64,000 nucleotides of DNA from Stylophora pistillata (taxonomy: Eukaryota): contig NW_019218343.1 of assembly GCF_002571385.2 (NCBI RefSeq), positions 7,491-71,490 on the forward strand, written 5' to 3'. A model generated the notes under the pieces. The model was not told where the DNA came from. It ran no database searches and worked only from the letters and a program-made list of their open reading frames with translations. Below are positions 4,301-63,100 of this stretch, piece after piece. How positions within the stretch are numbered: position 1 is the first letter of the stretch; each line of letters opens with the position of its first letter. The position numbers and the translations under genes are program-made.

Positions 4301-7300
4301 GAAATCCTTAACGATTATTCCACGAGTGTGCGTTGAATATGAGATGATAGCTAACCAACGAGGCCCGTAGAGCCAAGATAGCTGGAATCATCTCCTACAC
4401 AACAAGCGCAATTGGATAATTGATTTATTAAAAACTCTCCAAAATATAGATAAATCTTCCCAACTTTATTTTACAAGAATAAACGGAAAGTTAAAATATA
4501 CAAAAATACTATCGGTTTAACTCGTCTTCATGCGCACGCATAGTGTGATGGCTCATAACCCATGACGGCTAAGGCAATGAAAATTTTTGAATCGCATCCA
4601 CTGATCCAGTTTTTAATGATATTCGGATATCATCGTAATTATTTTCATCACCAGAGCAATGACATTGTTAAGTTTCTTACCCCAGCCAAAGAAATAGAGG
4701 TACCGCATGTTCACTGTGTTGAATACCTCTACAATCATTATGTACAAAAAAACTCCCTCTATGAGCATCCATCCAAACGCTGCCAGATAGAAGTAGTGGA
4801 GTAAAACAGCCACTAAGATGCACACGGACTGAAATGAGAGATCGGATAAGCTGATAATTAAATTCTCCAGGGAAAGATCAAGCCAGGAGACTTTGCACCA
4901 CATCTTACATCAAAAATGGTCCCAGTCTAGTTATCTTCACATGAGAAGTAATTCGTCTTCTTGAAATAGACAATAGTGAATGACTTCGGAAGTAATGAAA
5001 GCGAAACTCGCGAACTTTGCCGGAGGCTTTTCAACGATGTGAAAGGAAGAAATTTAGTTCACCTAGAAATTCGGCAGAAAAAAATTGTATCGCATTTGTG
5101 ACATGCATTTTGTTTTGGCGAGTTTGAAAGCGATATTTACTTCTAGCGTCAATTCGCCGAAATGTGCTGCAATTCATCGATCGAACAAAACAAACTGCGC
5201 GGAATTTCTTCTCTGAGGGATGAGACGACTAAGCTTACAACACATAAGATGAAATTGATTGTAAAGAACGACTAAATATGTGACTACAAATGGAACTTCT
5301 TTTCGTACCTTATTGCTGGTAGCATCGATTCCGGATAAAAATACTAGCTGAGCAAGAAACAGAGCCGTGGAAAGATTCAGCCTGACTTGGATTCCTTCGG
5401 CTTTAATTTTCCTGTTTAAAAGTATTCAACAAATTAGATAAACATGGAATTTTTACTTGGCAACCACCCAGAAGTCTACAGCAAACATTACTGAGAAGAA
5501 AGGTACATAGTGCAGAGTATGTTGATAGGTTCTTTCTCTGCTTCTCTTCCTAAGGGGGGGGNNNNNNNNNNNNNNNNNNNNNGGGGGGGGGTCACGGGCA
5601 CCCAGGAGCCCCCTGGCTACCCCCTTGACTATATCAAAGGTGATTAAAGTTAACTACAATAACTCTACTGACCTCAACTTTAGAAAAACGGAGATATTTG
5701 TCCCTATTTTGGTGGAACGATTCCTAACTAATCTTTTCCTAAAACAAATTGCTCAAACAAGATATTACCGTACAACAAAACCTCGGCGTTACTTTTATAT
5801 CTAGAAATTTTTTCTCCCTTTTTTTCAGAAACACTCACATAAATGTCACATAGACGAATATGACCAGTGCTTCCCCAACGAGGGATAAGGAGCAACCAAC
5901 GTAGGTAATAATGAGCAATGCCCTTCTGTGCTCCGGTGGAATGTTACCTTCCTGAGAATCAAAAAGAAAAAAGAAAACAGGTGGAAAATGAGATAAAAAT
6001 TACAAAGTGGTTGAGAGATTATGACTTAAAAGCTTTGGATTCGTTGGAAATTCTACTAACTCCGCGATTAGCCGTTCCAAAAGTGATGTATTGCTAAATA
6101 ACGTTCGAAACGTCAGCTTTGAAACTTTTTACGGTGGCCAATTTACTTTATCAACTCAGTTGATAAAACCAGAATTACCTTATAATTGTACCCTACCGAC
6201 GCAGCACCACAATTTCTTTAGAAACTAACCCCCTTTGTTCATTTCTCTCCACAAATAGCTTGTAAAAATGAACTATTCATAGGCCGACGAAGGGCTAACC
6301 CTCGAAACGTCAGCTTTTGTAATCGTTACGGTGGCCAATTTACCATTTCAACTTTGTTGATATATCCAAATTATTCATAGCCCGATCTGATACGAACAGA
6401 CTTGCCTTTGAAGGAATTATTAAAGTATACCTCCTGGCGAATAAAAACCAGTGACCTCCTGGCGAATAAAAACCAGTGTGATAAGAATGACCCAAAGACA
6501 AAATTCAGTAGTCACAGAGGTGGAATGGAGCAATAAGCTTAAAAAAAAATCCAAACGCAATCACGATCACTGCAAACAACCGTATACAATTAGATGCGTG
6601 CGCATAAGCGACGCACATGGCACACGATGAACTTGAAGTCTTGTAGGGAGTTTTATTTTTTTTTAGTTCCCAAGATAGCAATGACTCTTGGATGAAACAT
6701 TCACAACATCACACCTCAATGTCCTTGTATTGCATTAGAACTGCGAAATTCGTGAGGTGGTTACAACTGCAAACAGTCGAAAGCATGGAAGAATCATTCA
6801 GTACCGTGCAGCCATCACTTGACCACGAACCGCCGTTCGTGGAGCTAAAAATAATTTGATAATAAACTATGGATAAGAAAGAAGAAAGACTGAAATAGAA
6901 AAATAAAGAAAGAACCTTCCACATATACTAAATGCCCAAAATCTAACAGATGACTGAATAATTAAATTGACCTACTTGAAATCCTCCATCCAGAAGACGC
7001 ATTGCCTTTCGACAATTTTTGGATCAATCTTCAGCTACCAAAGGAAGCGTAATGACGTTATGGTGAGAAATGACTACTACACTTTCCATCTAATATAAGC
7101 CCCATTCAAATGGTCGAAATTCCTTTGCCGATAACTACATTTAAAAACACAATATAGTCTATTTTACCTCGTTGTGACTAAAATAAATGATGATTTTATC
7201 TTGAATAGTTTCATTCTGAGGAGGGTCAAGTTCAATTCCAACGACATCAGAAATCAGTGTATAGCTACAAAGATAACAAAACATACTTAAATCTTGTGTG

Positions 7301-10300
7301 TCTATTAGTATATCACTAGCTAATGACGCACGAGTCTATCTTGACATTTCTGGGCTATTTGTACCATTTCCTGTAATTTTTCCCCCCCAGAATCTATTGA
7401 AGTTAAAAAAAATAATAACAAAATGAAATACGTAAATTAAAGCTCCCCCTGAGGGGCTATTCGGCCACAGTGTAGACTAACTAAGTAGTTAAAAATCCAC
7501 ACTGGCAGAAGGCAGACCAGTGGGCCATTTACAGAACACAGCCGAGGATTTTAACTAGTGGCAACTGAGAACAAATCCAGTGATTAGCAGGGGGGAGGAT
7601 TTGAACCCGAGACACAAGTTCAGCACCCTGACCACTCGGGCACGCCGCCTCCTCTAGCTTGCAAACTGAAACCTTAAACTTGAATGGAGCTATCCACAGA
7701 TTAAGTCCCAGTGAGAGGACTGTTTGGCAGAACGGTATCTCGGCTCCTCCCATTTACGCTCTCCTTACACCTGCTATTGGAGAACTAGAATTTAAAACAG
7801 TAACTAATATCCTTTCGCCTTGCACTTAGAAACGACTCTCTTTAATGGATAATTACTAATTCTTACATGCTGCCGTTATAATTCCAAAGACTGGCTTCAT
7901 TCCTTGCTTTTCGGTGCAATATAACTGCAATAACCCTCCCTGAAGGAATGGCGAAAAAATTTAACATATTAATAAAAATTTGCATACTAATCAAAAGACA
8001 ACTTTGTTACTTTTTTAACTCCCGGTTAACTCAATAGATAGAGCGCTGGACTGTTTTGCGGGAGGTCGAGGGTTCGAGCCCTGGCCGGACCAACACTCAA
8101 GGTCTTAAAATAATTGAGAAGAATATGCTACCTTTCCTTAACATCAAAGAAATGGTTTGATATTCTAGTCTTCTCGGATAGGGACGAATAAATGGAGGTC
8201 CCGTCTCCTGCAGGGTTGGGGTAGGAGACGTTAATTTCCCACACACGAGATTACTGTGTGATGGATGTCCTCCCCTAGGGTGGGATGGGTGGGAGGGTGT
8301 ACTAGCACGAATGGTTCCAATGTTCCTTTCTAGTCCTTCCCCACTGCAAAACTTAATGCAATGAAAATGGACTAAATTAAATTAACTCCAACTGATAATG
8401 AATCTTAGCGTTCAGAAGAGACTTCATATACCTACCTGCGTCTTTAAACACTTTGTAGGTGATAATAACTTGGACCATTTTGCTCTCACTGCTGTTGTTA
8501 TTTATATAAAAACTGATCTCAACATCAGTGGAAACTCCTTTAGGTACTTTTCTCACTTTAGTATCTATGATATTTCAGTAAAAAAAAAGGAAATGAAAAT
8601 GTAGAAATTAAGTCAAATGAACTCTACAAAATTAGCTGTACATCGATGGCTATAGGACTACAGAAGAGGTGAAGTCATCCAAGATGGCAGCCAACTTGAC
8701 AGCCGCCATCCTAGAACGCCTTTCAAAACAAAGAAAAGAAAAAGTTTGAAAGTTAGCATGAAATTTCTTGCAATTTGATCCTAAGTATCCGAATGTTTCA
8801 GATAATTTTTCAGAAACACTTTCATCGAATAAACATAAAATCTAGCAGTTTCATTGAGAATGAATTCCTAGTTATTTTCTTGAGGCATACTGTTACCACA
8901 GTAACCGACTACACCCAACTCGCCCTTAAAAGAAACTTGCAATCCACAATCCTCGTGCTCAAAACATCCACTTTCCTGAATTTTTTCATCGGTAATCAAC
9001 CAAGTGTGTCATTCAAAAATTTAGAACTTTTATTAATAATAGAGAGATTGAAAGCCAAGTTTAAGTGGAGAGAAAAAGAGAAAAAAAGAAGTTTTCTTAA
9101 CAAAACAAGTTAAAAATTTAAATACCTGGCAGGTGTATTAATACTTACCAAGACCTGATCCCATATCTAGAGTGTAAGTATAATTCCCTTCTCGACAATA
9201 AGTTTGACAGCAGTTCAGGAGTGTGTCCTCGATTTGGCAGCTACCGATCGTCATTACATCATGCTCTTCACAAGACCAGGAGTATTCTAACGCCTGTAGA
9301 TGCAGCGGGAGAAGCACAAACAATTATATAGCTGATTTTGAAAAAAAAAAATCATTTGCTATTGCGAGATGGTACTTGCTAAAATGAGGTACTTTGTTTA
9401 CATTGAAATGAAAGGTGAGAAGTAATTTTGTACTTGGTTTTGGTTGGGGGGAGGGGGGTGAGAATGAAATTGATTCAGGAGTGTTGGGATATATTTTACC
9501 TGACTGTCTGAACGAGTTCCTTTACTTTGTACGCACTTTGAAAGCTAGATTAAAAAGAGAAGAGTCATTTTTTCAGTGAAGTTACGAATTAAAACATCAT
9601 ATTGGTAACTGTTCGTTAACAAGTACACAGCTAACCGCCTCCTGGTTAGCTCAATTTGTGGAGGGCTGGACTGTTGTGCGGGAGGTCGAGGGTTCAAGCT
9701 CCGGCCGGACCAACACTCAGGGTCGTAAAATAATTGAGGAGAATGTGCTACCTTTCTACAATATCAAGAAATGGATAGATATTCTAGTCTTCACCGGATA
9801 AGGACGAATAAACCGTAGGTCCCGTCTCTTGCAGGGTTAGGGGTAGGAGACGTTAATTTCCCACGCACGAGATTACTGTGTGGTGGATATCCTTCCCTGG
9901 GATGGGATGGGTGAGTATAAGACTGGCCCTGAAAAGCCCATGTGGGAGTGGTCAACCAGTATAATAAATCTCTTATTAACCAAGCTTGCTCGGGACCGTA
10001 CTGGAAGAATATCGGCCCTCGATCTTTTTTGTACGGACCGAGCGCAGCGAGGTCCGTACTGTCAAGACCTCGGGCCGATATTCTCCCAGTACGGCCCTCG
10101 CGCTTGGTTAATAAGATATATGTACTTACCAGATACTGACGGCATTGATCTGAATAATCACGAGAATTATCATGAGGCAGAGATGAATCATCTGTATCTA
10201 AGTAAAATGAATTATCGGCAATGGGGTATTTAGAGTTTGGTTTTGGATCAACCTATTTCATAATCCCTGAATGAAATTTTTCTTTATTCTCATCCTTTGT

Positions 10301-42124: not shown

Positions 42125-44437
42125 TGAAATCGTTTCTCAAAGTATGTTTGTTCTCTTACAAGAAACCACAAGTTCTTTGGGTCCAAGAGACCTTCTAAGC
42201 AATGCTTCGTTTGTTTGTGAGAAATGCCAGTTGTTACGTAACTGAAGGCCCTTGAAGTGATGTTTTGGATATTGAATACTGCATCAAGGAAGCAAAAAAA
42301 ATTAAATAAAAATAAATGTTTGTCTCTATAACGGCAACTAGAATTTAAAATGATTAGATCTACACAGAATTACATTTTAGGACAAGCATTCGAGGAAGGT
42401 AACACCCAAAAATAAATAAATAACTACATAAATAAATAAATAGAGAAACACTGTCGTTGCATGTCTGCGGTTTTCGTTGAAAAGCGAAGACATAGACAAA
42501 AATAAACCTTTATAAACTTGCTTGTTTTTTTGCTATTATTGATTTTCGTCAAAAATTCAAAGTTTCGGCTTGCAAAAAGACCAGGAGAAGGTTGTGTACT
42601 TCTGTTTAAATTGCCAAAATTATTTCGGAGTCAAATGTCATTACGAAACGCAAATAAAAACATGTTTGTGGGAAATAAGTTTCAATGATGGTATTACCTG
42701 GAAAAAACCCTTTTCAGAATTCATGTGCTGGTCAGCTCTCTCAAAAATACCAAGTAAATCTTCCTCCAATTCCTGACCGGGTACAGCAAGTGAAAGGACG
42801 CCAAAAACCTCACCGAAGGATATAATCCACCCACAGAAGACCCCTAATATTCATGTTTCTAAGGGAAGGCAACTTCTGTTTTATTCAAATTCTGTTTCGT
42901 GCAAAACCGGATCCCTGCAAAAGAGGCTTTTGTGTTCTAAACTTTCACCTGTGTTGAGTACATGTATGGAAACTTTTAAAATAGAATTTAAATGCTTTTC
43001 GACACTTCGATAAGTCGCTCAAAGATCTCAAGTGCGGCGCGCAGAGTTCGGCAAAATTCTGAGCTTTTAATTTAAGATTATAGACAGAATTATAATCGTC
43101 ACAAACCACGTAATTTCGTGGCTCCAAATACTAACAGTTGTACTGTTCTTTTGTGCGCAGATCTTTTACATTTGCCTACGTAAAAACATACATACATCCG
43201 TTCATCTCATTCATGTCCAGTAACACTCGGTCGCCAAATAATTAACATAAGTCCTTCGGCTGATTGACTTTGCCCGAAATAATCAGACTCCCGATATTTT
43301 GCGGGGACTCTTTGGACGTTACAGAGAATATGGATCGCATTAAATTCTGTTGATATCATTCATCAATGCCTCGCTAGCAACATGTTCTAACAGCCTTAAA
43401 TTGAACTTTAGACACTATGAAATACAAGTTTCGAATAATTACTCTAAGAAGTAAAACAAAACTGTAATTTGAAATCAATCGCATTTACTAGGTTTATCTA
43501 AAATGCGTTCGTTATTCGTATTACATATTACAGACTTGGTCAACAGTAGAATTCTTTGTTAATACATGTACTTCAGAGCTAAATTGTTCATACTCATCGT
43601 AGCTACGAGATAAACGTGTTAATGATACATACAAGAAATTATATCAAAACATTTTGCTGAGTTTATTCTAACAGCTTCACTTGAATGACAACAATATGAT
43701 TTGATGCTCACTACACGTTGTATTTTAACGTCGGAAGGCGACAATAAAATCGAGAATTAAGTTACTTCTTGTTATATGTTGGTCTACCTGTGCCCTTTTT
43801 ACCATATAAGGAAAACTTCGTGGTGAGCTCGAGCGAGCAATAACTGAGAACGACTAACCATCACTGTTACTGTGTTTAGTGGTAGTTTATTTAATGTTAC
43901 ACTTTCGAATATATTACACTTCTCGTTATTTCATGAAAAGCATGTCGAGGTAATACATAGTTGCAATCAAAATGTTTCGTGTCTATTTAACAAATTATAA
44001 CTAATTGTGGTTTTTAGCGTTGGTCTGTTCACTTATCGACAACGACATTCGTCATCAGTCATCGAAATGTTGCAGACCACAACTTTCTGATCACTTTGAT
44101 GAAAAATATGAGTACAGACCATATATGATATGATATAAGTACAGACCACGCTAAAGCACTGGCGATTTGTTCTTTTATGACGATATGGACGCCACACTGT
44201 TTAGGCCGACCAGCGGCCGAATGAACGAATTGCGAACTGGTATAATCACGGTATCTCTTGTCGATGCAGTGGATGGAAGAGCAAATTAACGGCAATATAA
44301 AAAAAATAATAGTTATAATGCAAAAAAATAAAAAGACAACAATGAAACAAATGGGAAAGCATGTCAATCAACAGCTTAAGATGAATTGGAGGGCACTCAT
44401 ACATGAAGTCGAACAAAAATAAATCGAACAAAAAATT

Positions 44438-46171
44438 TTACTTTTTGCGTGTCGCACAAAACGAGCAGAACTCTCCTGATATAATTGAGCATAAGTCTAC
44501 AGACTCATTGACATTCCAGCAAACCACTTGATTCCATTCGCCATCATGGTCAAACACATCCATCTCCACTATTTCAGTACTGTTGTTTTCCCCCGATTCC
44601 GAGTCTTTCTTAAAAAGGGAGCAGTTTAGATACTTCAGGATGGAGAACGTCTTCGGAAACACTATACAGTCATCCTTTTTTCCTTTAGGCTGAACTGAAA
44701 TGCCAAATTTACTCCTTCGCATGAAATTCTTGAAATCCTCTCTTTCCATGATATGCCAAATCAACAAAAAATTGTTATAAACGCCACGTTTAGAATCTTT
44801 CTCTACCAGTTTCTCCATCACGGGGACTTGGTACGTTCCATCCTTTAAGGGTATTTTAAGACGCTCGATTGCCTCGATTTGGGACAAAATGTGCTCTCTT
44901 CCCTCATCGGTGTCTCTTACCATGAGAAGAAGTTCAATAAGGGTAAAAACCTGATCCTCGATGGCCTCCGGTTGCTTAAAAACTGGTTTACTGAAAGATT
45001 TACGTGGGTTCAACAAATTAGATCTCTGGAACAGGGCTGGCTCAGCAGATTGGGGGTGCAGAGAGTATTCCATAGAAACCAGTAGAGGATGTTGCATCGG
45101 TAGGTCAGAGCTGGTTTTTTCACTTTTCAAAGTTTCCAAATCCTTCCTGATCAATTCAAGGATCTCTAGGGTCTTTTGGCCAAGTTGGTGAAGCTCCCAT
45201 TTCTCCTCGCTTTCCATCAGAACGTTCAAGAACAAGGTCTTTAGCGTGTAGGTTCCAATGACTGCTTTGTATTCCATCGTGTACAGGTCCAGTTGAGACT
45301 CAAGGAAAGTTTGAATAAGATACTTCAAAACACGATAGCAACGTTTTTCGACCGAGTCGAGCGGGAGAGAGCTAAGCTTCGATAACTCCCATGTGGACTC
45401 TGATCTTCGTGAGCACGAGATCGTATTGATCGACCAGAAATCGAAGAGAAGTTGCAGAGGTTCAGAGTTCGGTGCACTATGGGGAATCTGGATGGCAAAG
45501 CAAATGTCCACTGACACAAACCTTTCTGAACCCTCAGCATCAGTAAACTTAAGGATTTGGAGGTATGTTCTACCTGAGGGGTATTTCAATCGGGCCACAT
45601 GTTGCCACATGGTGAATTTCTTAACCTGTGACTGCAATGATCGATGAATCGCTTCAGACACCATGGCGGAGATTTCATCTCTCCAAGGACTCTTGCCATC
45701 TTTAAAAATTAGTTGATTACTCCTCCTTTGTTCGTTTTCCTCTTGATCGCACCAATCAGGGCAAAGAATGTCTTCCATGAAACAGAGCTCCTTCATGTTC
45801 AAAACAAGCTTAGTCGACTGAATGTTCATGTCATAATTATCTGCACAAAAAGGTTTACCATCTTTCCACACCAATTGTTCTTGCAATTCAGTTAAAATAA
45901 AAACGTAGTCAAATTCATCCGCTTGTCCAATCTTAGTACCTTCCACCATACTCCCCCCCTGTTGGACAACAGCTTTGTGAAACAAACGGTACTTACCAGA
46001 AAGGTCCAGTAACGTACCTTGTATGATTTGGTTCAGCTCTTCTCGGATAATTTGAGAGTTTTCACCGTCTGGAAAGTTTGCTTTTGTGTCAGCGAGCCCC
46101 GTTAAGAAAAGGTCAAGCTGATTTGGGCAAGCCATGGTTACGGAGTCTTCACAAGGTATTTTTGAAGCCAT
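44438..46171 (-). CDS. cGAS-like receptor (cGLR; Mab21-fold nucleotidyltransferase), 577 aa, single coding exon
   Basis: GGSMVEGTKIGQADEFDYVF matches the hGS..EG.K....EhD signature (G73-S74, E86, D88). The third carboxylate is in VSVDICFAI (D222). Mab21 C-lobe motifs: RRSESTWE (WRLSFSxxE-like), KRCYRVLKYL, TYTLKTLFL (SYHLKT-like), W...LG, and NLL. Confidence 0.9.
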   Translation of the reverse strand: MASKIPCEDSVTMACPNQLDLFLTGLADTKANFPDGENSQIIREELNQIIQGTLLDLSGKYRLFHKAVVQQGGSMVEGTKIGQADEFDYVFILTELQEQLVWKDGKPFCADNYDMNIQSTKLVLNMKELCFMEDILCPDWCDQEENEQRRSNQLIFKDGKSPWRDEISAMVSEAIHRSLQSQVKKFTMWQHVARLKYPSGRTYLQILKFTDAEGSERFVSVDICFAIQIPHSAPNSEPLQLLFDFWSINTISCSRRSESTWELSKLSSLPLDSVEKRCYRVLKYLIQTFLESQLDLYTMEYKAVIGTYTLKTLFLNVLMESEEKWELHQLGQKTLEILELIRKDLETLKSEKTSSDLPMQHPLLVSMEYSLHPQSAEPALFQRSNLLNPRKSFSKPVFKQPEAIEDQVFTLIELLLMVRDTDEGREHILSQIEAIERLKIPLKDGTYQVPVMEKLVEKDSKRGVYNNFLLIWHIMEREDFKNFMRRSKFGISVQPKGKKDDCIVFPKTFSILKYLNCSLFKKDSESGENNSTEIVEMDVFDHDGEWNQVVCWNVNESVDLCSIISGEFCSFCATRKK

Positions 46172-46296
46172 TCTACACTGAATCGTCAGATCTAAAATAA
46201 ATTTGAATCGATAGCTTTACCTCTTGATCTTGTAATTTTAAAATTCAAACCTTTAATTCAGCCTGATAATTCCCTCGCAATTTAAAAACCGAAAGA

Positions 46297-46470
46297 AAGA
46301 ATCATCTTCACGAATCATCACTCATATGTTCAAGAATCATCACTCATATGTTTCATATGTTTGTTGTTGTTCGAAAGAAAGTTGTTGTTGTTCGAATCAT
46401 CACTCATATATTCAAGAATCATCACTCATATGTTTCATATGTTTGTTGTTGTTCGAAAGAAAGAAGTTGT
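46297..46470. repeat. Imperfect tandem repeats just upstream of the cGLR start
   Basis: GAATCATCACTCATAT occurs four times, and TTTCATATGTTTGTTGTTGTTCGAAAGAAAG twice. Confidence 0.8.
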
Positions 46471-47148
46471 CAAAAATACAAGATACAATCATTCTAAACA
46501 TTATATTGAAAAGGAAAACCTCATAAACATTTACTTTCCACGCACATAAACATACGCTTACTACTAAACTAGTTTCGTCTACCGACCTCTTCAGTTGTTT
46601 GCAATTGCGATGTATTGTTAAAAAATTCAAATCTCAGGTGAATTCATATAACATTGCACGAGGAATAACCTGGTATCTAGTTAAAGAAAGACGCTAAAGT
46701 AAAACTGATAAAACAATAACAGCGGTAAAGTAAAACTGATAAAACAAGAAGTGTAAAAAATAACAGCAGACTAGAATTCGGTTTCACTGTGCAATAGTCA
46801 TGTGATAAAGTGAAAAAAAAGAAAAAACAGTAAGAAAACGACGAAAGTAAAAAGCATTCCAATAGCACGTTTTTACCACACAAAACCTAAGGTTGTGTCA
46901 GGTCACTGAGAAAAAAAGGGTGAGAAAGGTAGAAAAACGAATCATTTTCTTTTCTAATTTCCTTCCGTTTACTCGATATTCGTTTTCCATCTTCCAGCCC
47001 TTCTCTTCCAATGGTGGAACAGTTAGAGGACTTTTTCAACGGAGAATCCATAAAAGTCAGAAATAAGTATCTCAGTTTGTAAAGAAAACCTTGAATCAGT
47101 GCCACATGTCCCTTTAGTAAAATTCTGCCACAAGAAAACTACTTCTAT

Positions 47149-47449
47149 AGGGTGTGGACAAAACCTGGCCTAGGCCATGGCCTACCCTGTGGCCTACCCT
47201 GTGGCCTACCCTGTGGCCTACCCTATGGCCTACCGGTGGTCAGATTTTTAAANTCGTTGGTAAGACAGTACTCAGGAAAACGTTGAAAGGTTTCCAGCAA
47301 TGCTATCCTTTTAAAAATCTGACCACCGGTAGGCCATAGGGTAGGCCACAGGGTGGGCCACAGGGTAGGCCATAGGGTAGGCCATAGGGTAGGCCACAGG
47401 GGACGCCACAGGGTAGGCCATGGCCTAGGCCAGGTTTTGTCCACACCCC
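47149..47449. mobile_element. Foldback/MITE-like palindrome with subterminal 12-bp tandem repeats (TGGCCTACCCTR)
   Basis: Arms at about 47149-47252 and 47309-47449 are reverse complements (GGGTGTGGACAAAACCTGGCCTAGGCCATGG...). The left arm has about 4-5 repeat units and the right arm about 7-8. Confidence 0.85.
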
Positions 47450-48159
47450 TTGTATAACGTACGTCACGTTCTGAACAATGAACTGTCGCTATACACTTGT
47501 CTCCGCGATCGACTTTTTGCTGAGTGATTACGGTGCTTAACAGAACTTGACACAATTCAGAATTTGAAAACGGCTCATATTCATTTCATCTCTTTCGCTC
47601 CCTTGATCTCTGTCAACAAATTTGAAGTTTAACAAATACTTTCGGAAGGCATTCAAGCTGCTTGCAAACGACAATTTGTTCTATGCATCAGTTGAGGTTT
47701 CTACCTCGAAAAGCCAAGCTCCGAACAATATATTTTTAAAGATTTTTTGCAGACCCTACCTTAACGTTTCTATATGATTGATGTATACCTCGTCAACTCT
47801 TGCTGTGTTCCTTTTGTTGCTTGAAACCGAAATTGATCAGTCTCAAGTCCGTTTGATGACATTGACCGTCAAAACTTATTGCTGCGTTGCGATACTTCGC
47901 CTCATTTCGCCACAGCGGACTTCACAGCTTACCACTAATCAGCAAATTGTTGGCTCTGATGTCGTTTCACTCAAAAGCGACCGTATAGTTCGCCTCAAGA
48001 TCACGTAGGATCTTTCCTTGTTGTTAAATTATTACTTCCGTACTGCGCGTGACAAGTCTATGCGCTCTACTCGGCTCCAAGCTCCCACAAACCATACGTA
48101 ACACCTTCACCAACACAATGTCACGCAACACTTCATCTTCTTATGGCGGGAATAATTAA

Positions 48160-51100
48160 ATGGCGACCAATTCGATAAGCTTGAAGTTTTTGCCTCGTCC
48201 TCTGCGAAGAGCTTTGCTTGATTTTCAAAAAGAGGGTGTTCGATTTGGAATAAGAAAACAAGGAAGGTAAAACAACCAATGAAGTTTATGAAAACCCAAT
48301 GCATATCTTAAAATGATTCAATGTTATTGCTTGTACTGAACTGTCCCGCATGAAATTATGCGTCCTAATTTAAACTGATTTAAATTACGAATATATTTTA
48401 TATAAATGTGCTTGTTAGCTTACACCGAAACTCATTTTGATTTGTGTTTATTTTTCCGTGGCTATTCACATTACAGATGTCTGATTGGAGACGAGGTATG
48501 TTCGAGTACTTTTGCTTCAAATGATGAATTAAATTGATCCCTTGTTCCATACAAATGAATCAATTACCTTGTAAATAATTAGGCGAGGGTATGCAAAAGG
48601 CTTCTTACAATTTCGATTCATCGACTGATCAAGAGTTAGATACTCTCTACAACTTCAATTCTTTGTCAAACAGATAGATTTGACAATCAAGAAATTTGCC
48701 AAGGGGACATAATTTATAGTTGGAATCAAACACTAAATTGTCTTTGCTAAAATATAGTTAGCCTTCTAACTCCTGTTAGTGACTAAGGCAGAATTTCTCC
48801 CTACGTTAGCCATACAATGTCAAGCAGAAAAGTGTTGAGAAAAAAAAAAGGGATAAGTAGTTAATCCAGTGCCAAATTCTCCAAACTAACATCACAACAA
48901 CTGTATGGCAGACAGTAAGAAGAATTATTAGGGATATCTTGGAAATGAAAGGACAGCTGATTTAAATCCATAACTGTGATTATGTCATAATATAAATTTG
49001 TGCAGATGGGACTAGGGAAAACCCTTCAAGCAATCAGTATCGCATATTATTACAAAGATGCCTGGCCACTGTTGATTGTGGTGCCATCCTCTGTCAAGTT
49101 CTCCTGGATTGATGAGATTGAGAAATGGCTGCCTGAGTTTGAACCACATGATTTGAATCTCATAAGATCAGGCTGCGATATCAGGTTTGTAATGAATGTT
49201 ATGTGAAGCAAGAAATGTCCCAGAAGCATTATGTTGTTTATTAGGTGACTCATCTGTCTTTAAAATTCATGAATGATAGAAGGATGAGAAATTCTGCTGC
49301 AGAAAAACTTCAAGGTTGTTATTAGAAAATGTAATAAGAAATTTTTTGGATGTATGATCTGAACTGAAAAGGCAGCTTAATTGAATTAAGCTTGTGTGAG
49401 GTCCATGACCCATGAGCACCCATGAGTGTATTTACCCATAAGCCCTTGCAGTAAAAAAGAAGAAGACCAGAGAATAAAGAAAGCACATGGTTCAATAGTT
49501 TCAAAGTTTATTCGGCGACTAAATGACAAAATTGGTGTTTCTGGACTTTTCGATTTTTCCACATGAAACGACGACCGTTTTCCCTTCTTTCAGCTGATTA
49601 GCCCTGCCAGAAACACCAATTTTGTTACTCGGTCACCGAATAAACTTTGAAACTATTGAACCATGTGCTTTCTTTATTCTCAGGTCTTCTTCTTTTTTAC
49701 TACAATGGCTTATGGGTAAATACACTCATGGGTGCTCATGGGTCACGGACCTCACACTTACTTTGCAAACAGGCGCATGTTGAAAGAAAATTTCCCTTCT
49801 AGGTGGGTTGGGAGGCATGCGCCCATGGGAAAAAATTAAAATAATTGAAACTCTCAGAGACAAGATTTCACGCATTCTGGGGCACTTTTGAGTACCTTTT
49901 GTAGCCACTCATTGCTTCTAGAATCAGTTAAAAAATATTTATTTTCTGTGGGTTTCCTACGGTCTGCCTTCTTTTGACAACCCTGAGAAAGACCTTGTTC
50001 CTATAGTCTTTCACCAAAATAATTTTTTTAAAAACATAAACAGCTAACTAACTGAAATAAACCAAGAAAACATACGAAAAAAAGAAAAAAGAAAGAATAA
50101 AACCTATTTAAATAAAAAGATCCTTTCTAAGAAGGTCTGTCCTGTAGTAAACAACTTTTAAAAATTAAATGTACATGTGCTTAAATCAGCACTTTTTAAT
50201 TTCTTTTTCAGTAACCTTGGAAAGGCCATGATTCATGTTGTGGGTTATGGTCTACTGAGCGTAGCAACCTCTAAGTTGTTGCTTGAAGCTCTGGAAAACC
50301 ATAAGTTGAATATTGTCATACTTGATGAATCACATTACTTAAAGAACAGGCAGTCAGTGCGCACAAAGCATCTGCTTCAAATCTGCAAGAAAGCCAAGCA
50401 TGCCATTCTGTTGAGTGGAACTCCTTCACTAGCTAGACCTAGGGAGGTTTGTGAAAGATGCTTTAGTTGGACTGTGAATGTATGAAAATCATATATGTGA
50501 ACTGCAGATTAAGAAATGAATATCAAAGTGATCTTAATTCCAATAATGAAAATTAATGGAAAGTTGTGAAATTAAAGGCCTGAAAGAAAATTCATGAATC
50601 CATGATATTGGTTCATAATAAACCTGTGAAGTGCTACATAAATGACTGTAAACATATGCCCCAGTTTGTCTGGTTGGCTGTTTTTACTTGACAACATAGC
50701 ATTGACATTTTCTTTCTTCTTTCAATGAATTAAGCTATTTCCTCAGCTGAACATTGTTTGTCCAGGCAAGTTTGGTTCCTTCAGTCATTTTGTTAAAAGA
50801 TACTGTGATGCACGGGATGTATTTTTCAGAGGGAAGAGGGGTTATGACACAAGGTAATGTTACCAATTAAGTGCACTGTATATCATCATGTAAAATTTTG
50901 CATTTTTAATGTTTTAATGTGTGACTTACAAATTCATTGATTACTTGATTGATTCATTAATTAAGATTGATTTAAATATGAAAGTGATCTTTGCAGTAAT
51001 GAACACTACTTAAGCAGTGTTGAAAATAAGGCCTGATAAAAAATTCATGCCTGAACATGATTTGAACCCACAACCTCTGTGATACCAGTGCAGTACTGGT

Positions 51101-57100: not shown

Positions 57101-60100
57101 TCGTCGGTTTGCTGAACTTGTCTTTAATGAAACCTAAAATCCAAAAAAAAGCCCTTACTCTAAGCTACAAATTTATGAAGCCAAGAGCCTTGAACGAGAT
57201 CGAAATTGGGGAGTAATTTACCAAAAGGTGTCAAAAAGTCGTAGTCCTTCCTTTAGTTAAACGCCCTAACGGTTAAAATATTACGTCTTCCTTTGTGGTA
57301 CTGTATGATAGAGTGAACATGTGCTGTTACTCTGATTTGTAGTCTGACTATGGTTCAAATGCACTGTTCGTCTTGTAATCAAAAGCGAATATTATATTTG
57401 ATCTGCAATTTCTTTTCTTCTTTGGAGTGTTTCTGTTTTCGATATTTGCATGCACTTGTTTGAACTTGCAGCAAGATTGTTCTATCTTTGCAGCTTACAT
57501 CAAAAGCTGGCAAAAAGGATCAAGGGCAGAGAGATCTTCGTTCTTTTTTTGTCGCAACACCAGTTTCATCAAAGTCAACTTCCTTCGAAAACAGCGCTTG
57601 TAGTCACTATACGACGGTCCCTATAGACAAAAATGCAAAACTGGGTGTGACCAGGAAAACAGCGGGGGATCCAATATATGTGCTGGACAAAGAAGAAGAC
57701 GGTTTATCGACTTGGGATGGTTTGAAGAATGATGCTCCTATTTCGGCAGGTGCATATTCTACCTCGTACTGAATGTGGTGTTGTAGTTGTAGTGGTGGTG
57801 AGGGAACATCCGACGTCTCTTCCTATTGATGCTTGTTCTCTGAGATTAGATTGCCTTATATATATATTTTTTTCATTCTTCATTAGTGCCTGATTTTGTG
57901 CAAATCCCCGAGGAAAAACCTCTCAAGAAAGACACTAAGTCTTGCGCAGAAAGTCGCGAAAACTGCGAAAATCTTAGAACTGACTTCAAACCTGGTAAAG
58001 AAGCATTAAAGGAAAAAGGATGTCCACTTAAGCTAAAAACATTAAAGTTCAAGAAAGGGAGACATGGCAAGCTATCATTTGCGGAAGGCAAAACAAACAC
58101 AAAACAGTGTCAACAAAAAACCAACTGCAATAGTCTTCTGAATTCTTTCGGAAATGATCCTGAGACGGAATCACAGACACTGCGAGGCTATCTTGATAAT
58201 GAAGATGAACCTGAAATTACAAATTTAGAAGATTCACAAAATATTAGAGAGAAGTATGATTGCTTGGGTGGAGGTTTGAAGGCAAGAGACCGAGAATTTT
58301 TTACCTATTTACAAGAAGCTGATATAGAGTGTGTAGAAGTGGTCTGTAAACGGACATCAAGACTGTTACAGGACCGTCAAGGTGGCTTCAATGACAGTAC
58401 TACCGAAAGAATGAAACACAAAATAGGACGTACAGTTAATGATTCGCAAAATTCATTTGTAACAAGTCAAGGTTCCAAAGGAGGATCTCCTTCAAGAGAT
58501 TCTGGCGAACTTGACATGTTAGATCCACCCAAGGGAACGTCAGATGTAGTCAACGGGGACACTGATGGCTTGCGCGATAAAATTGGAAAGTTACAAAATA
58601 GGCAAGTAACAGACTCTTGCACAAATTCCTGTGGTCTTTATGTAGAGGAAATTGGGAATAAATCTGACATAGATTCTGCTGAGAAAAGGAAGATGCCTTC
58701 TCCCTCTGATCAAGGAAGACAAAGTCTTGAAAACGGTTCTTCCTATTTTAACATTGTTTCTTTAGAAGATGGAGCTACTGCAATTGAAGGTGTTTTGTGC
58801 GAGAGGAGTAACAACCTACGATATGGAACTAGACTGAACCAACCTTCAAAAGAGAGCCTAAGACGTGCAAGAGGCGATGTTTTCAATCCCCCAGAGAATT
58901 CATCACGAGATCATGAAAATAAGGAATGTTTGCCGATTAAAGAGGATGAAAATGCCAGTATCACTGCAGTGCCTTATGATGACGATTCATCAGATGATTT
59001 CCAAGATATCGAATTTAAAAATACTCAAGTTGCCAATCTACTGGTCGCACAGAGGCCCACCAAAAAGCGGAAGGCCACTAACAAATCGAAACAAAAGACT
59101 GCAAACCGAGGAGCCAAGACTTGTAACAAGGATAAGCAACCGCCTGCCGATTGGCCCTGTGGTGCATGTACTTTTATTAATGATGGGCAGCTTTTGGAGT
59201 GTTCCATCTGCTTCACACCTCGTGCAAATATTGACGAGACCACGAGCACTGTCGACAATGAAGATCTATGCATCAAAAGTATCGGTGGACAAGGTTATGA
59301 TGACGTTTGTATTTCAGATAAAATGGACCAATATGAAGCTGGAGTAGACTGTACAGATACCAGTTCTACCAGTGTAGATCGTGGCAGGACCAATGGAGTA
59401 GTGAAACATGAGTCATCGCAGATTTCTTTTGGCTCTGCCCAAATGACGTTTCCTATCAGCACTGGGCAGACTGAAGAACCACATGCTTCTGAAAAGACTA
59501 TTGTCCATAACTTGTCGAGTGAGTGGATGATAACACTGCCAAATGATTCAAGGACTGACAGCAAATCTTCTATCCGTGGTGCTAATTTAGCTGTTCGCGA
59601 TAGTGCTTCTAGTCATGTTGCTGCTCCTGGTTTACCTCCTTGGTCGTGCTCGGCTTGCACCTTTTTGAACTTGTTTGAAATGATTGAATGTTCAGTATGT
59701 CTGACTCCAAAACGGCGAAGCCGGAGGGTGAGTGCAAAAAAGAATCTACTTACAGTGGAAACTGGAAAGGAGGTCAATGCGTGCGAGATGACTCTAAGTG
59801 GCAAGAGGCGACGGAAAGGAAATAAGAATGTAAAAGACCATAATCCACAGGACATGGATGTAGAAGCAGGTACGGAGGCACGCTCAGCTCGTTTGGAGGA
59901 ATGTATCAACAACACAACAGCTCAACGTGATCGTGACATTTCATTGGCGGGAGATGAAGGCTTGACACCAGAACCATTGGGATCATCCCCTGTAACAGAT
60001 AGTAGCAGTCACACGCAGTATGGCCATGAAATCTTTAGAGAAGAGATTCCTGGAGAGGTCACCTCTAACCCTCGAAAGCGACTTAAGCTGGATGAGGTCG

Positions 60101-63100
60101 AAGGAGAAAGTAGCATCCGTGTTGTTTCATATGATTCAGAAATTGTGTGCAGTAACAGCACTATAAAGTGTTCGTATGCAATGTCCTCTCCTGTATCTTC
60201 ATACGAGCTAATGGCTGCCACACCCCCCGACGATAAAGGCGTAGATGTAGTTCGTCCACTCAACTGTGTTCTTTCCTCAGATGAAGAAGAACTAGAACTT
60301 AGAAACGATCATAAATCAAGGAACTGTAAAATTGAAAATAGTGATTTGGAAATGGACTGCGAACAACTTGACGTTTCAGATCATTCAGTGACTGAACAGT
60401 GCAGTGGAGTTTCTTCGACAGTTTCCTCTTATGGGAAGAGGGGTGGCCATTTGCCATCTTCCCAAAAGTCGGAAATTATCAAGGTCATGGAGGAACTTGA
60501 AGAGCTGAAGGCTGCAGCAGAAGAACTGTTTAATTCAGAATGGGAAGACGACGAGCGTTGGTGGGAAGAAGAGAGTTCCTTTGGAGAAAGTTCATTTGCC
60601 TCTAGTAGTGAAACAGTGTCAAGTAGTCCAACAGTTACAAGGCCAGGATTTACAAAGTGCTCCGAACTGTGTTCAGTCACAGAGCTTAAAAAGAAGCTTG
60701 AAGCAGATACTAAACAACTAAATGATACCCGGCGGCCCAAGACTGTTCATAAACCTCAATCTGCTAAGGGTATCCCTGAAAGTAAGGAAGCCACGCCACT
60801 AGCAAATGATCATACTTTAAGACCTGAGTTGGATCCAGGGGGGGAAGAGGAGAAAGAAGATGAAGAAGACGCCCCCCCTGAAGCGATGAAGTTGAAATTC
60901 TGTTTAAGTCGTTACACAGAACGGTTATATTTGTACTCCCAGGTTAGTCATTTATCGGTTTCTTTTTTTCTTCCTACTCTCCTTGTAACTAATACAGTGT
61001 CAGGATGATTTTTTCTACAGAGCTTCAGATAAAAGTTACGTCCAACCAGAAAAGGCAATAAGTGTGTGATTAGTAAGATTTTCTTCGATGCTTAAGGGTT
61101 ACTCAAAATATGATTATCGCAAGATACAACAGCTTCTTTAAATTCTGAAGGACGGGAGCAGTGGTAGTTTTGTAGGAAGAGCGCAAAGAAAAACAAACAA
61201 ACAACTCGAACTTGAAGAATACAAAAGTAGAGGTTTTGTTCATCTTTATCATTGTGCTGTTTGGTTTTCTGCATAGGATGGCCTTCCTCTTGGAATTAAT
61301 TTTTGCATGTCTGATGTTAAGAACTGCAACATGGAAGATTTACCCGCCATTCTTCTTCATGAAGAAAATTTAACGCAAATTAAAAGATTCCTTGAAAAAT
61401 GGAGGAGGTAAGTAAGGCTTGACTATTGATCACCAATTGTAGTTCGATTGCTTCAGTATAGCTTTGCAATAGTTACTGAATCAACCTGGATCGTGCGTAT
61501 ACAAGTATAGTGATTTGATCTAGACAAAGAGAATTGCGATATGAATGTTCTAGCAGGCTCATTATGAGTTTGTAAAATATTCAAGGTTGAAAAAGATTAC
61601 ATTTGTGGTCAGCACAAAATACAACACACTTTTCGTTGTATCTTTTTTTTTTTTCTAGGGTGGGAGAGGGGAAGAAACGAATACTCCGAAAATCAGGACT
61701 TGTGTTTGATGATCCTTTGGAAGCTTACGAGTGTGCAAGAAAGGTAACTGTGGGTTTGTTTTTCATGAAATCGTTAAACATTTGCACAAAATTTTCTCTC
61801 CCTAGTTTATTTCGTTCTCGTGATCGGAAATACACTAACTACACCCGGCAATGCGGGAAAATACTCGGAGGAGATGGTGGGTAAACGGTTGTATCCTTAA
61901 AAGGAAGACGCCTTTTGGCCGCCTTTAGTGGGTACAATGATGTTGTTGTCGTTGTTGGTGGTAATAGTAGTGCTACTGTTGTTCTTTTTACTATTCAGTG
62001 CGCAGACGCCCTTTGAAATTACTGATAATTTTGAAACCTTGAGCGAGGGCCGCCTTTTCAATAAGAATTTCTTTACTTAATCCTTCCCCTGTTATGAGAA
62101 TTGTATTTATTTACATTGAAATGAAGAACGTTTCAGTTAAAGTACTTTATTTTTGGTTTCGTTAGGGTATGTCCAGGACATCCAGCTATGTTCGACACCC
62201 TTCAAAGGTAAGGGACATATTTTTTTCAGTTCTTTTCCTTATTTTGTTAACGGTTATTTTGGCGTTGATGTTGATTTCTGATCAGTAGAGATTTGCTGAA
62301 GCAAAGGCATATAAAAAACCAGGAAAGATTTATTGCTGCCCGATGTTTCGGAATCATCATGATTCCATTATCAAGAGACTAGTTAACTAGCATGCAACTA
62401 AGGAAAGGTATGAGATAAGTATAAATTACAATAAACGGCCTAAACAAACACCTTGGCGCGGATGGAATCTGTTTGCACGTTCAGTGTTGGTTTACGCATG
62501 CGAATGTATAACATTCTTTAACGAGGCAATCAAATTTGCCGCTACATTTCGTGATGATGGGAAATTGCTCAATGAAGCGTTCAGGCATTTCACTTTTGTG
62601 TTGGAGGTTATAATGTTTGTAAATCGAAGATGACTTTCTAGTGTGCCCTTCTACGCGCTCATGTAAGTGACCACGTGTATAACCCACATACACTGCATCG
62701 CACAGGTTACATTTCAATCCATAGACGAGACATTGTAGGTTGACAATAGGGGGCTTAATCTCGTGTCGCTTAAGTTGTTGCTCGAGCTTAGGGCTTACAA
62801 ACACTGGTTGGACAGTTTAGCAGTGTTGTCGATGCTATTAGGATTTCTGTTGTTTCAGTTACAACACAAAAGTGTTTAGTGTTTTTTTATTTTTTTTTTC
62901 CATTCTCTGATTATTTCTTTGTACTTTTCTCTTCCTTTACTTGCAACCTCGCAGGAAACGCAGATTCAGGCTGTTCACAATACCGCAGAAGAAGTCGGAG
63001 GAAAGGTTCGGGTGGTAAAGAAACCCCAAGTTGTAGAAAACAAAAGGAAGAAAACCGATCACGCTAAGAACAAAACAGATGGTGCAGAGGAGGCCGAGTG

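Follow-up and report, generated by a model that had tools for sequence, protein, structure and literature searches.

A single-copy cnidarian orthogroup of divergent, putative cGAS-like receptors with an orphan cysteine-rich C-terminal module

What could a cGAS-like enzyme do with an end piece that belongs to no recognised family? This question is raised by a gene in a 64,000-nucleotide stretch of the coral Stylophora pistillata (contig NW_019218343.1, forward-strand positions 7,491 to 71,490); this whole 64-kb stretch is called the window here, and positions are counted from its first letter. The list of open reading frames (ORFs) of the window holds a frame of 577 codons plus stop at 44438-46171 on the minus strand, with a G+C content of 0.43 against about 0.35 in its flanks; its translation, which ends in ...CSFCATRKK, is matched at 100% by a Stylophora pistillata protein cluster. 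An initial annotation, made from the sequence alone, had described this 577-residue frame, correctly, and had read it as an apparently active cGAS-like receptor (cGLR) with an unassigned C-terminal tail. By sequence comparison, the protein is a member of a single-copy orthogroup of divergent cGLRs found across Cnidaria. The reading that we favour, with modest confidence, is that of a catalytically competent cGLR whose orphan tail forms an integral part of the protein and serves to regulate the enzyme or to sense a ligand other than a nucleic acid.

Fifty relatives share 41-86% identity with the protein; 41 of them cover at least 97% of the query, the others being fragments. Their named sources are Oculina patagonica, Actinia tenebrosa and the scyphozoan jellyfish Sanderia malayensis, the last with a protein of 41% identity. 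As the Sanderia orthologue also carries the tail, both the family and its tail predate the anthozoan-medusozoan split. Mean identity is 62% over the tail (40% to Sanderia) and 69% over the nucleotidyltransferase (NTase) core (44% to Sanderia): as judged from these alignments, the tail matches the catalytic core in strength of conservation across stony corals, sea anemones and a scyphozoan jellyfish. The initial annotation would have abandoned its view of the tail had orthologues not conserved it; conservation extends out to a jellyfish. A profile built from seven orthologous tails was run in an exhaustive HMMER search against 1.84 billion protein representatives. It returned two full-length clusters plus fragments within the orthogroup, and the module was found in no protein outside it, weak WD40 matches being judged generic (see below). 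Nor did a six-frame search of the S. pistillata genome reveal a second copy of the tail, the gene being single-copy. In Oculina patagonica, the chromosome record of the orthologue also holds a 343-residue 'hypothetical protein' that aligns with 36% of the query at 61% identity, including part of the tail, and represents either another, truncated copy or the same locus annotated in a different way.

The cGAS-like (Mab21) nature of the enzyme proposed by the initial annotation is borne out by an invariant catalytic set and by structural and profile matches. AlphaFold2, given an alignment of 25 sequences, produced a model of the full-length protein, tail included, with a mean predicted local distance difference test score (pLDDT) of 75.9 and a predicted template-modelling score of 0.80. 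Foldseek matches this model to cGAS structures at E 8e-9, and VIA-align superposes its residues 18-436 on residues 145-507 of mouse cGAS (Z 17.1, root mean square deviation 3.6 Å, 307 residues), with MiD51 next at Z 15.9. Compared with solved structures, the family profile has as its top matches 'cGAS-like receptor 1' (8gjy, E 2.6e-7), on which a literature search gave nothing useful, and the Mab-21 protein 7lt2, while in the ESM Atlas the closest clusters all belong to Mab-21 and include ITPRIP and TMEM102. The Pfam family PF20266 is recorded in several orthologues, faintly in one of them, and not in the S. pistillata protein.

The NTase signature G73-S74, E86, D88 and D222 lies where the initial annotation had put it, and these residues are invariant in the 25 orthologues, as are R255, S257, E262 and Y308; R256 and W261 are nearly so. 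R255-x-S257-x-S259-x-x-E262 is the counterpart of the cGAS nucleotide-contact motif, WRLSFSHIE in the human enzyme; likewise SVDIC(L/F)A corresponds to human SVDITLA. This register is confirmed by a Pfam-verified Mab-21 paralogue of the same genome, in which SVDLALA and LRCSQSCLE stand opposite these motifs, and the orthologue consensus around D222 is SVDICLA. The DICFA and RRSES motifs, which had been called atypical and taken as a hint of a non-standard product, are therefore normal for the family, fit ordinary cGLR patterns, and give no ground to expect an unusual product. With its catalytic and nucleotide-contact residues kept unchanged or almost so in 25 orthologues, the enzyme has probably remained catalytically competent. 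The paralogue itself (L002:85-1767 on G000:C235, minus strand) is an uninterrupted 560-residue ORF with a PF20266 match at E 1e-14 and about 30% identity to the protein studied here in the N-terminal region; it extends some 150 residues beyond its Mab-21_C match, and this tail is unrelated to ours.

The published cGLR pattern runs h[QT]GS, then [X8-20] and [DE]h[DE]h, then [X50-90] and h[DE]h (Li et al. 2023, PMC9980059). The protein has 11 residues between S74 and the invariant E86-F-D88-Y, an invariant third acid in V-D222-I, and homology that extends from the NTase core over the C-terminal helix bundle, together with a predicted structural match to known cGLRs. The region of the core insertion is conserved at a mean identity of 70%, with F131, D134, P138, W140, FKD156-158, R164 and D165 invariant. 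The second insertion, before the NLL motif, was noticed by the initial annotation and exists; it measures about 35 residues (354-388) and not about 20, has a conserved core HP-x-SAEPALF-x-RS with H372, P373, E377, P378, L380 and S384 invariant, and is modelled with low pLDDT at 354-364. The zinc thumb of vertebrate cGAS is absent, as had been observed, only some 15 residues separating the RRSES motif from the CYRVLKYL helix.

Where does the fold end and the tail begin? By model residue 430-436, the alignment of every cGAS chain has reached the C-terminus of that chain. The helices 401-420 and 422-443, modelled with high confidence (mean pLDDT of 85-95 in ten-residue blocks), are in this model the last helices of the Mab21 C-lobe and not part of the tail. 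As the cGAS fold ends near residue 436-445, the extra module comprises residues 437/446-577, a length of 130-140 residues. The module described by the initial annotation thus exists, its length of about 170 residues being overestimated by some 35-40, as measured from the end of the cGAS alignment. In the full-length model it consists of a short helix (448-456) followed by a beta-rich domain (463-577). Five cysteines, C502, C517, C551, C569 and C572, are invariant in the 25 orthologues, and the loop 523-547, which carries a net charge of -9 in S. pistillata, is acidic in all five orthologues examined though its sequence varies. The tail is not of low complexity and ends in CSFC, two further points on which the initial annotation holds.

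The identity of the tail was sought in several ways. Pfam searches with three cuts of the tail and with seven orthologous tails gave nothing relevant, in agreement with the earlier remark that the tail could be assigned to no family, and an ESM Atlas search with the tail gave no usable match. The check proposed at the outset, AlphaFold plus Foldseek on the tail alone, yielded a model (residues 457-577, 25-row alignment) whose pLDDT of 53.6 is too poor for use and left the fold unassigned: Foldseek gave a best E of 0.6, and VIA against 48,161 chains a best Z of 3.8 with weak ferredoxin-like similarities, neither of which is evidence with so poor a model. A WD40 domain was considered and rejected, as the summed weak matches fall on profile positions 14-55 only (hhalign probability 37%), a stretch of 130 residues is too short for a propeller of repeated 40-residue blades, and the WD40 family of Pfam has no match in the tail; we judge that these matches reflect a generic motif, in which three hydrophobic residues are followed by W and one more hydrophobic residue, with E-x-F a few positions further. 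With respect to zinc binding, the tail offers five invariant cysteines including one CxxC and no match to a zinc-finger family. For membership of the fatty-acid-binding protein (FABP) or intracellular lipid-binding protein (iLBP) family, the one positive result is a profile match to myelin P2 (E 1.7e-4, see below): PF00061 has no match at E <=10 in seven tails, and the 10-stranded barrel with a helix-turn-helix lid that marks this family is not modelled; a six-frame genome search found no PF00061 exon, which is uninformative as FABP exons are short, and a literature search for cGLRs associated with FABP or lipocalin gave nothing useful.

The gene is transcribed. Its stretch is present in 20 public runs from nine studies, four runs being recorded as polyA RNA libraries, and contigs from four runs were compared with the genome, three of them polyA and from one study, the fourth from another study and with an RNA status that is a guess. 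Contigs of 2.06-2.25 kb cover 44212/44380-46193 gap-free in three of these four runs, and three overlapping contigs cover the same stretch in the remaining one. All long contigs depart from the genome at 46193; their loose ends map to 47762-47791 and 47791-47820 and reach 220-267 nt past the splice junction. The corresponding splice signals lie on the minus strand: two canonical, alternative donors 29 nt apart (AG/GTAGGG and AG/GTATAC, window 47759-47791), whose choice varies by run, and a common acceptor at 46192/46191, TTATTTTAG (TTTTAG). As these sites are on the gene's own strand, the contigs reflect real transcription and not DNA carry-over, and spliced contigs of polyA RNA dispose of the reservation, made in the initial annotation, that the gene might not be expressed. 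The mRNA is made of a non-coding exon 1 and of an exon 2 with the whole coding sequence (CDS), separated in the gene by an intron of about 1.6 kb in the 5′ untranslated region (5′UTR). The term 'intronless' used earlier is thus right for the CDS, which is a single exon, and wrong for the gene. Beyond the stop codon, contigs continue colinear with the genome to about 43700-43820, their depth dropping below about 43750. An Rfam scan of 43300-48200 gave no match.

What would the protein do? We propose that a cytosolic NTase of the Mab21 fold probably still produces a nucleotide second messenger. A cyclic dinucleotide is the most plausible candidate, and a STING receptor of the coral would read it; 42 cGLRs and seven STING genes are counted in S. 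pistillata (PMC9980059). Through the orphan tail, the binding of a ligand or partner other than a nucleic acid would switch on the NTase; the tail might be metal-stabilised by way of its cysteines. Five invariant cysteines, one pair of them in a CxxC, in a cytosolic protein suggest such a metal site. The nature of the activator is hinted at by the isoelectric point (pI) of the core, 5.1 in S. pistillata and 5.2-6.3 in four orthologues. cGLRs that sense double-stranded RNA or DNA (dsRNA, dsDNA) have a pI above 8.5 (Li et al. 2023, PMC9980059), and the acidic Pd-cGLR and Sp-cGLR2 have negatively charged ligand grooves and probably non-nucleic-acid activators (PMC9980059). With an acidic and not a basic core, the protein is probably activated by neither dsRNA nor dsDNA, which argues against the sensing that the assay proposed in the initial annotation had assumed. 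Slow one-to-one evolution suggests moreover a conserved ligand, endogenous or a broadly shared microbial one, and not an arms-race target. Going one step further, the tail could be a new kind of cGLR sensor domain which binds a non-nucleic-acid ligand, perhaps a lipid, a small hydrophobic or a cationic one, and activates an acidic cGLR common to corals, anemones and jellyfish; we regard this bolder version as rather unlikely. If true, it would mean that a dedicated ligand-sensing domain was fused to a cGLR in ancient times, and would offer a first approach to the ligands of acidic orphan cGLRs.

Several observations weigh against the reading of a competent cGLR with a sensing tail. The Pfam Mab-21 family (PF03281) scores 22.3-23.4 bits, just under its gathering threshold of 24.1. 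The protein departs from the published pattern at two places: its start is V-Q-Q-G-G73-S74, with Gln two positions before GS instead of h[QT]GS (the residue preceding the invariant GS is Gly, in a few orthologues Ser or Ala), and a conserved core insertion of about 40 residues brings the distance between D88 and D222 to 133 residues instead of 50-90. The fold of the tail is weakly predicted, with a pLDDT of 45-80 in the context of the whole protein and, as said, lower for the tail alone. Co-folding of the core (1-445) with the tail (446-577) and a zinc ion gave an ipSAE of 0.01, which speaks neither for nor against docking. The overall pI is a crude proxy for the ligand-binding surface, and immune receptors do not usually evolve in this slow, one-to-one manner, which could point to a role outside immunity.

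Would the protein then be something other than a free-standing cGLR? The public record suggests a fusion: the only named member of the ORF's 90% cluster is GenBank PFX16260.1, a 'putative G-protein coupled receptor 133' of 1456 residues, in which ORF residues 1-577 are joined to about 20 downstream exons, from 41473 down to 15921, of adhesion-GPCR-like character (window 15921-46171, minus strand). In that case the ORF would be the first exon of a cGLR-GPCR fusion and the tail an internal linker, and a GT does span the last codon and the stop codon. In all four runs, however, the RNA contigs read through the stop codon into a colinear 3′UTR and never show the joint of 44441 to 41473, although contig data could miss a rare fusion isoform. 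The orthologues of Actinia tenebrosa (566 residues) and Oculina patagonica (578 residues) are stand-alone genes with an uninterrupted CDS, the neighbours differ in Actinia, where Codanin-1 lies downstream, Logan contigs of transcript size (about 2 kb) carry full-length coding sequences for orthologues of 557-578 residues, and every orthologue terminates within a few residues of the CxxC. The fusion in PFX16260.1 is almost certainly an annotation artefact, and a genuine fusion appears hardly credible. A better case can be made, though it too strikes us as quite improbable, for a non-immune scaffold of the Mab21 superfamily, possibly non-catalytic like MAB21L1/2, MiD51, ITPRIP and TMEM102, whose motifs would serve nucleotide binding only. 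The structural score of MiD51 comes near that of cGAS, ITPRIP and TMEM102 are among the top Atlas clusters, and a single-copy gene with slowly evolving one-to-one orthologues is unlike the expanded, fast-diverging coral cGLRs. Against this, the three catalytic carboxylates, the GS and R-x-S-x-S-x-x-E are invariant over the anthozoan-scyphozoan divergence, while non-catalytic Mab21 proteins typically lose catalytic residues, and the best sequence-profile matches are cGLRs and not MiD51 or MAB21L.

Other alternatives concern the tail only. It might be a diverged and shortened FABP-like (iLBP/calycin) barrel, through which a lipid or small hydrophobic ligand would gate the enzyme or by which the enzyme would be targeted to membranes. 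The lead comes from myelin P2 (FABP8), the top solved-structure match of the tail, whose alignment keeps a single register over almost all of the domain: the single protein reaches E 0.05 and the seven-sequence tail profile 1.7e-4 (24.5 bits; positions 19-128 against chain residues 1-122), the Actinia tail alone finds P2 in the same register (E 0.7), the strand-helix segment FLLIW-x5-EDFKxFMR resembles the FABP signature, and the AlphaFold2 strand 465-474 and helix 477-486 agree with FABP strand A and helix I. Yet essentially one protein matches, the only other FABP being 5bvq at E 0.5, although other FABPs are about 40-70% identical to P2. The 25-row full-length profile brings no gain in score (P2 at E 0.05), the jellyfish orthologue gives no match, PF00061 nothing at E up to 10, and neither AlphaFold2 model contains a barrel, Foldseek and VIA returning neither FABP nor lipocalin. 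The alignment also requires that 11 residues be deleted and that the last strand be missing; WD40 repeats are drawn by this short motif as well, which suggests a generic beta-hairpin pattern, and FABPs are not known to have the five invariant cysteines. We consider such a barrel doubtful. Alternatively, the tail could be a small zinc- or disulfide-stabilised module for oligomerisation or for docking of a partner, such as an adaptor or a component of the STING pathway, and not for ligand sensing, a view to which we give a similarly low credence. It would account for the invariant C502, C517, C551 and C569-x-x-C572 in a cytosolic protein that has no signal peptide or transmembrane segment and whose core has no cGAS zinc thumb; metal-dependent folds are often predicted poorly without the metal, which fits the low pLDDT, and some published cGLRs carry ankyrin, TPR or death domains (PMC9980059). 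However, the tail has one CxxC knuckle only and no known partner, it matches no zinc-finger family of Pfam, and the co-prediction with a zinc ion gave no usable result (ipSAE 0.01). A competent cGLR with a sensing or regulatory tail is still the reading that we retain.

Table 1. Features of the gene and of its product (positions in the window; residues in the 577-residue protein)
Feature	Position	Strand	Evidence
Complete CDS, 577 codons + stop, single coding exon	44438..46171	-	ORF list, cluster match, gap-free RNA contigs
cGAS/Mab21-like catalytic domain, residues 18-445 (spine helix, NTase core, helical C-lobe), predicted	44837..46120	-	AlphaFold2, Foldseek, VIA, profile matches, sub-threshold Pfam
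G73-S74, NTase GS motif	45950..45955	-	translation; invariant in 25 orthologues
E86-F87-D88, catalytic acidic residues 1 and 2	45908..45916	-	translation; invariant
Conserved insertion in NTase core, about residues 95-165	45677..45889	-	conservation; mostly confidently modelled
D222, third catalytic acidic residue (SVDIC)	45506..45508	-	translation; invariant
R255-E262 (RRSESTWE), nucleotide-contact motif counterpart	45386..45409	-	conservation; register with paralogue LRCSQSCLE
Residues 354-388, family-specific insertion before NLL	45008..45112	-	conservation
Orphan C-terminal module, residues 446-577	44441..44836	-	beyond all cGAS alignments; conserved; no Pfam match
C502	44666-44668	-	invariant cysteine
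C517	44621-44623	-	invariant cysteine
Variable acidic loop of tail, residues 523-547	44531..44605	-	pLDDT <50; 44% mean identity
C551	44519-44521	-	invariant cysteine
C569-S-F-C572, C-terminal CxxC	44456..44467	-	invariant in 25 orthologues
Non-coding exon 1 (5′UTR), alternative ends 47760 or 47789; upstream end approximate	47759..48030	-	contig loose ends, donors
5′UTR intron, about 1.57-1.6 kb	46194..47758	-	junctions, acceptor TTATTTTAG, tandem repeats
3′UTR, about 550-800 nt, end approximate	43650..44437	-	RNA contigs; poly(A) signal scan
Candidate poly(A) signals ATTAAA and AATAAA	43895; 43667	-	poly(A) signal scan

The 5′UTR intron contains repeats of its own. An 82-bp unit is duplicated in tandem at 46311-46470, without an Rfam match, and a 35-nt core of this unit occurs at at least 143 places of the genome, mostly in satellite arrays with a period of 247 bp. 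The summed depth of RNA contigs reaches about 6,000-9,000 at this duplication against 12-21 over the gene, therefore the satellite family is transcribed somewhere. Two arrays of 12-bp microsatellites, at 47166-47234 and 47328-47432, lie about 100 bp apart; their units, TGGCCTACCCTG and GGTAGGCCACAG, are near reverse complements, making these arrays inverted, and they produce a spurious 110-residue 'WPTLWPTL' ORF at 47223-47555. Upstream of the gene, an uninterrupted ORF of 1040 residues occupies 57886-61008 on the plus strand; its sole match, to a RanBP-type zinc-ribbon, is weak and stays below the cut-off (21.5 against 27 bits).

The enzyme class and the existence of domains appended to cGLRs are already known, and nothing yet shows an unusual mechanism. 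What is new is an ancient, single-copy cnidarian cGLR orthogroup with an orphan cysteine-rich C-terminal domain, conserved insertions in the core and an acidic core, masked by a chimeric annotation. The public annotation can now be corrected, this protein having been hidden inside the 'GPCR 133' model PFX16260.1; together with the unusual motif spacing, the chimeric model may explain the apparent absence of the protein from cGLR catalogues, as far as their accessible parts go. Ligands of cGLRs have so far been assigned only to basic, nucleic-acid-sensing enzymes and not to the many acidic orphans (PMC9980059). The gene described here is a tractable case: it is single-copy and expressed, has a predicted intact catalytic site, and its single-exon CDS is easy to clone. 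As a discrete module conserved across cnidarians, the tail can be deleted, swapped or used as ligand bait, and this orphan end piece may show a new way of switching on cGAS-like sensors.

How does the protein compare with known systems? At about 15% identity to cGAS, it shares with cGAS and the cGLRs (PF03281 and PF20266) the bilobed fold (18-436), the GS, the E-h-D, the third Asp, R-x-S-x-S-x-x-E and the stacking Tyr Y308, and with most invertebrate cGLRs the absence of a zinc thumb. It differs from them by GGS instead of [QT]GS, by the core insertion of about 40 residues with its spacing of 133, by the pre-NLL insertion of about 35 residues, by an acidic rather than basic core and by the extra C-terminal module of 130-140 residues. 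Human MB21D2 is likewise a conserved, slowly evolving orphan cGLR-like protein (PMC9980059). No specific sequence affinity between the two was detected, however, and the structure of MB21D2 is not among the profile matches, in which 8gjy and 7lt2 appear. MB21D2 is not known to have a comparable tail. In the case of myelin P2/FABP8, the resemblance to the tail consists of a weak full-length profile match (E 1.7e-4) and a similar N-terminal strand-helix signature, whereas the tail is some 20 residues shorter, has its five invariant cysteines and lacks Pfam support and a predicted barrel; this similarity is a weak lead and does not amount to membership. The nearest functional analogy is offered by the low-pI coral enzymes Pd-cGLR of Pocillopora and Sp-cGLR2 of Stylophora, whose activator is presumed not to be a nucleic acid (PMC9980059). 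They are different proteins from the one studied here, no such tail being described for them, and the diagnostic motifs of our orthogroup are absent from the sequences of the 140 tested enzymes tabulated by Li et al. 2023 (PMC9980059), to which this absence applies. Finally, cGLRs fused to ankyrin, TPR, death or further cGLR domains also combine a catalytic domain with an appended module (PMC9980059). Three such fusions are reported in S. pistillata, a species for which only ankyrin and death-domain fusions are described (PMC9980059). In contrast to these, the module studied here belongs to no known family and is limited to one orthogroup; common to anthozoans and scyphozoans, it is for this reason also much older.

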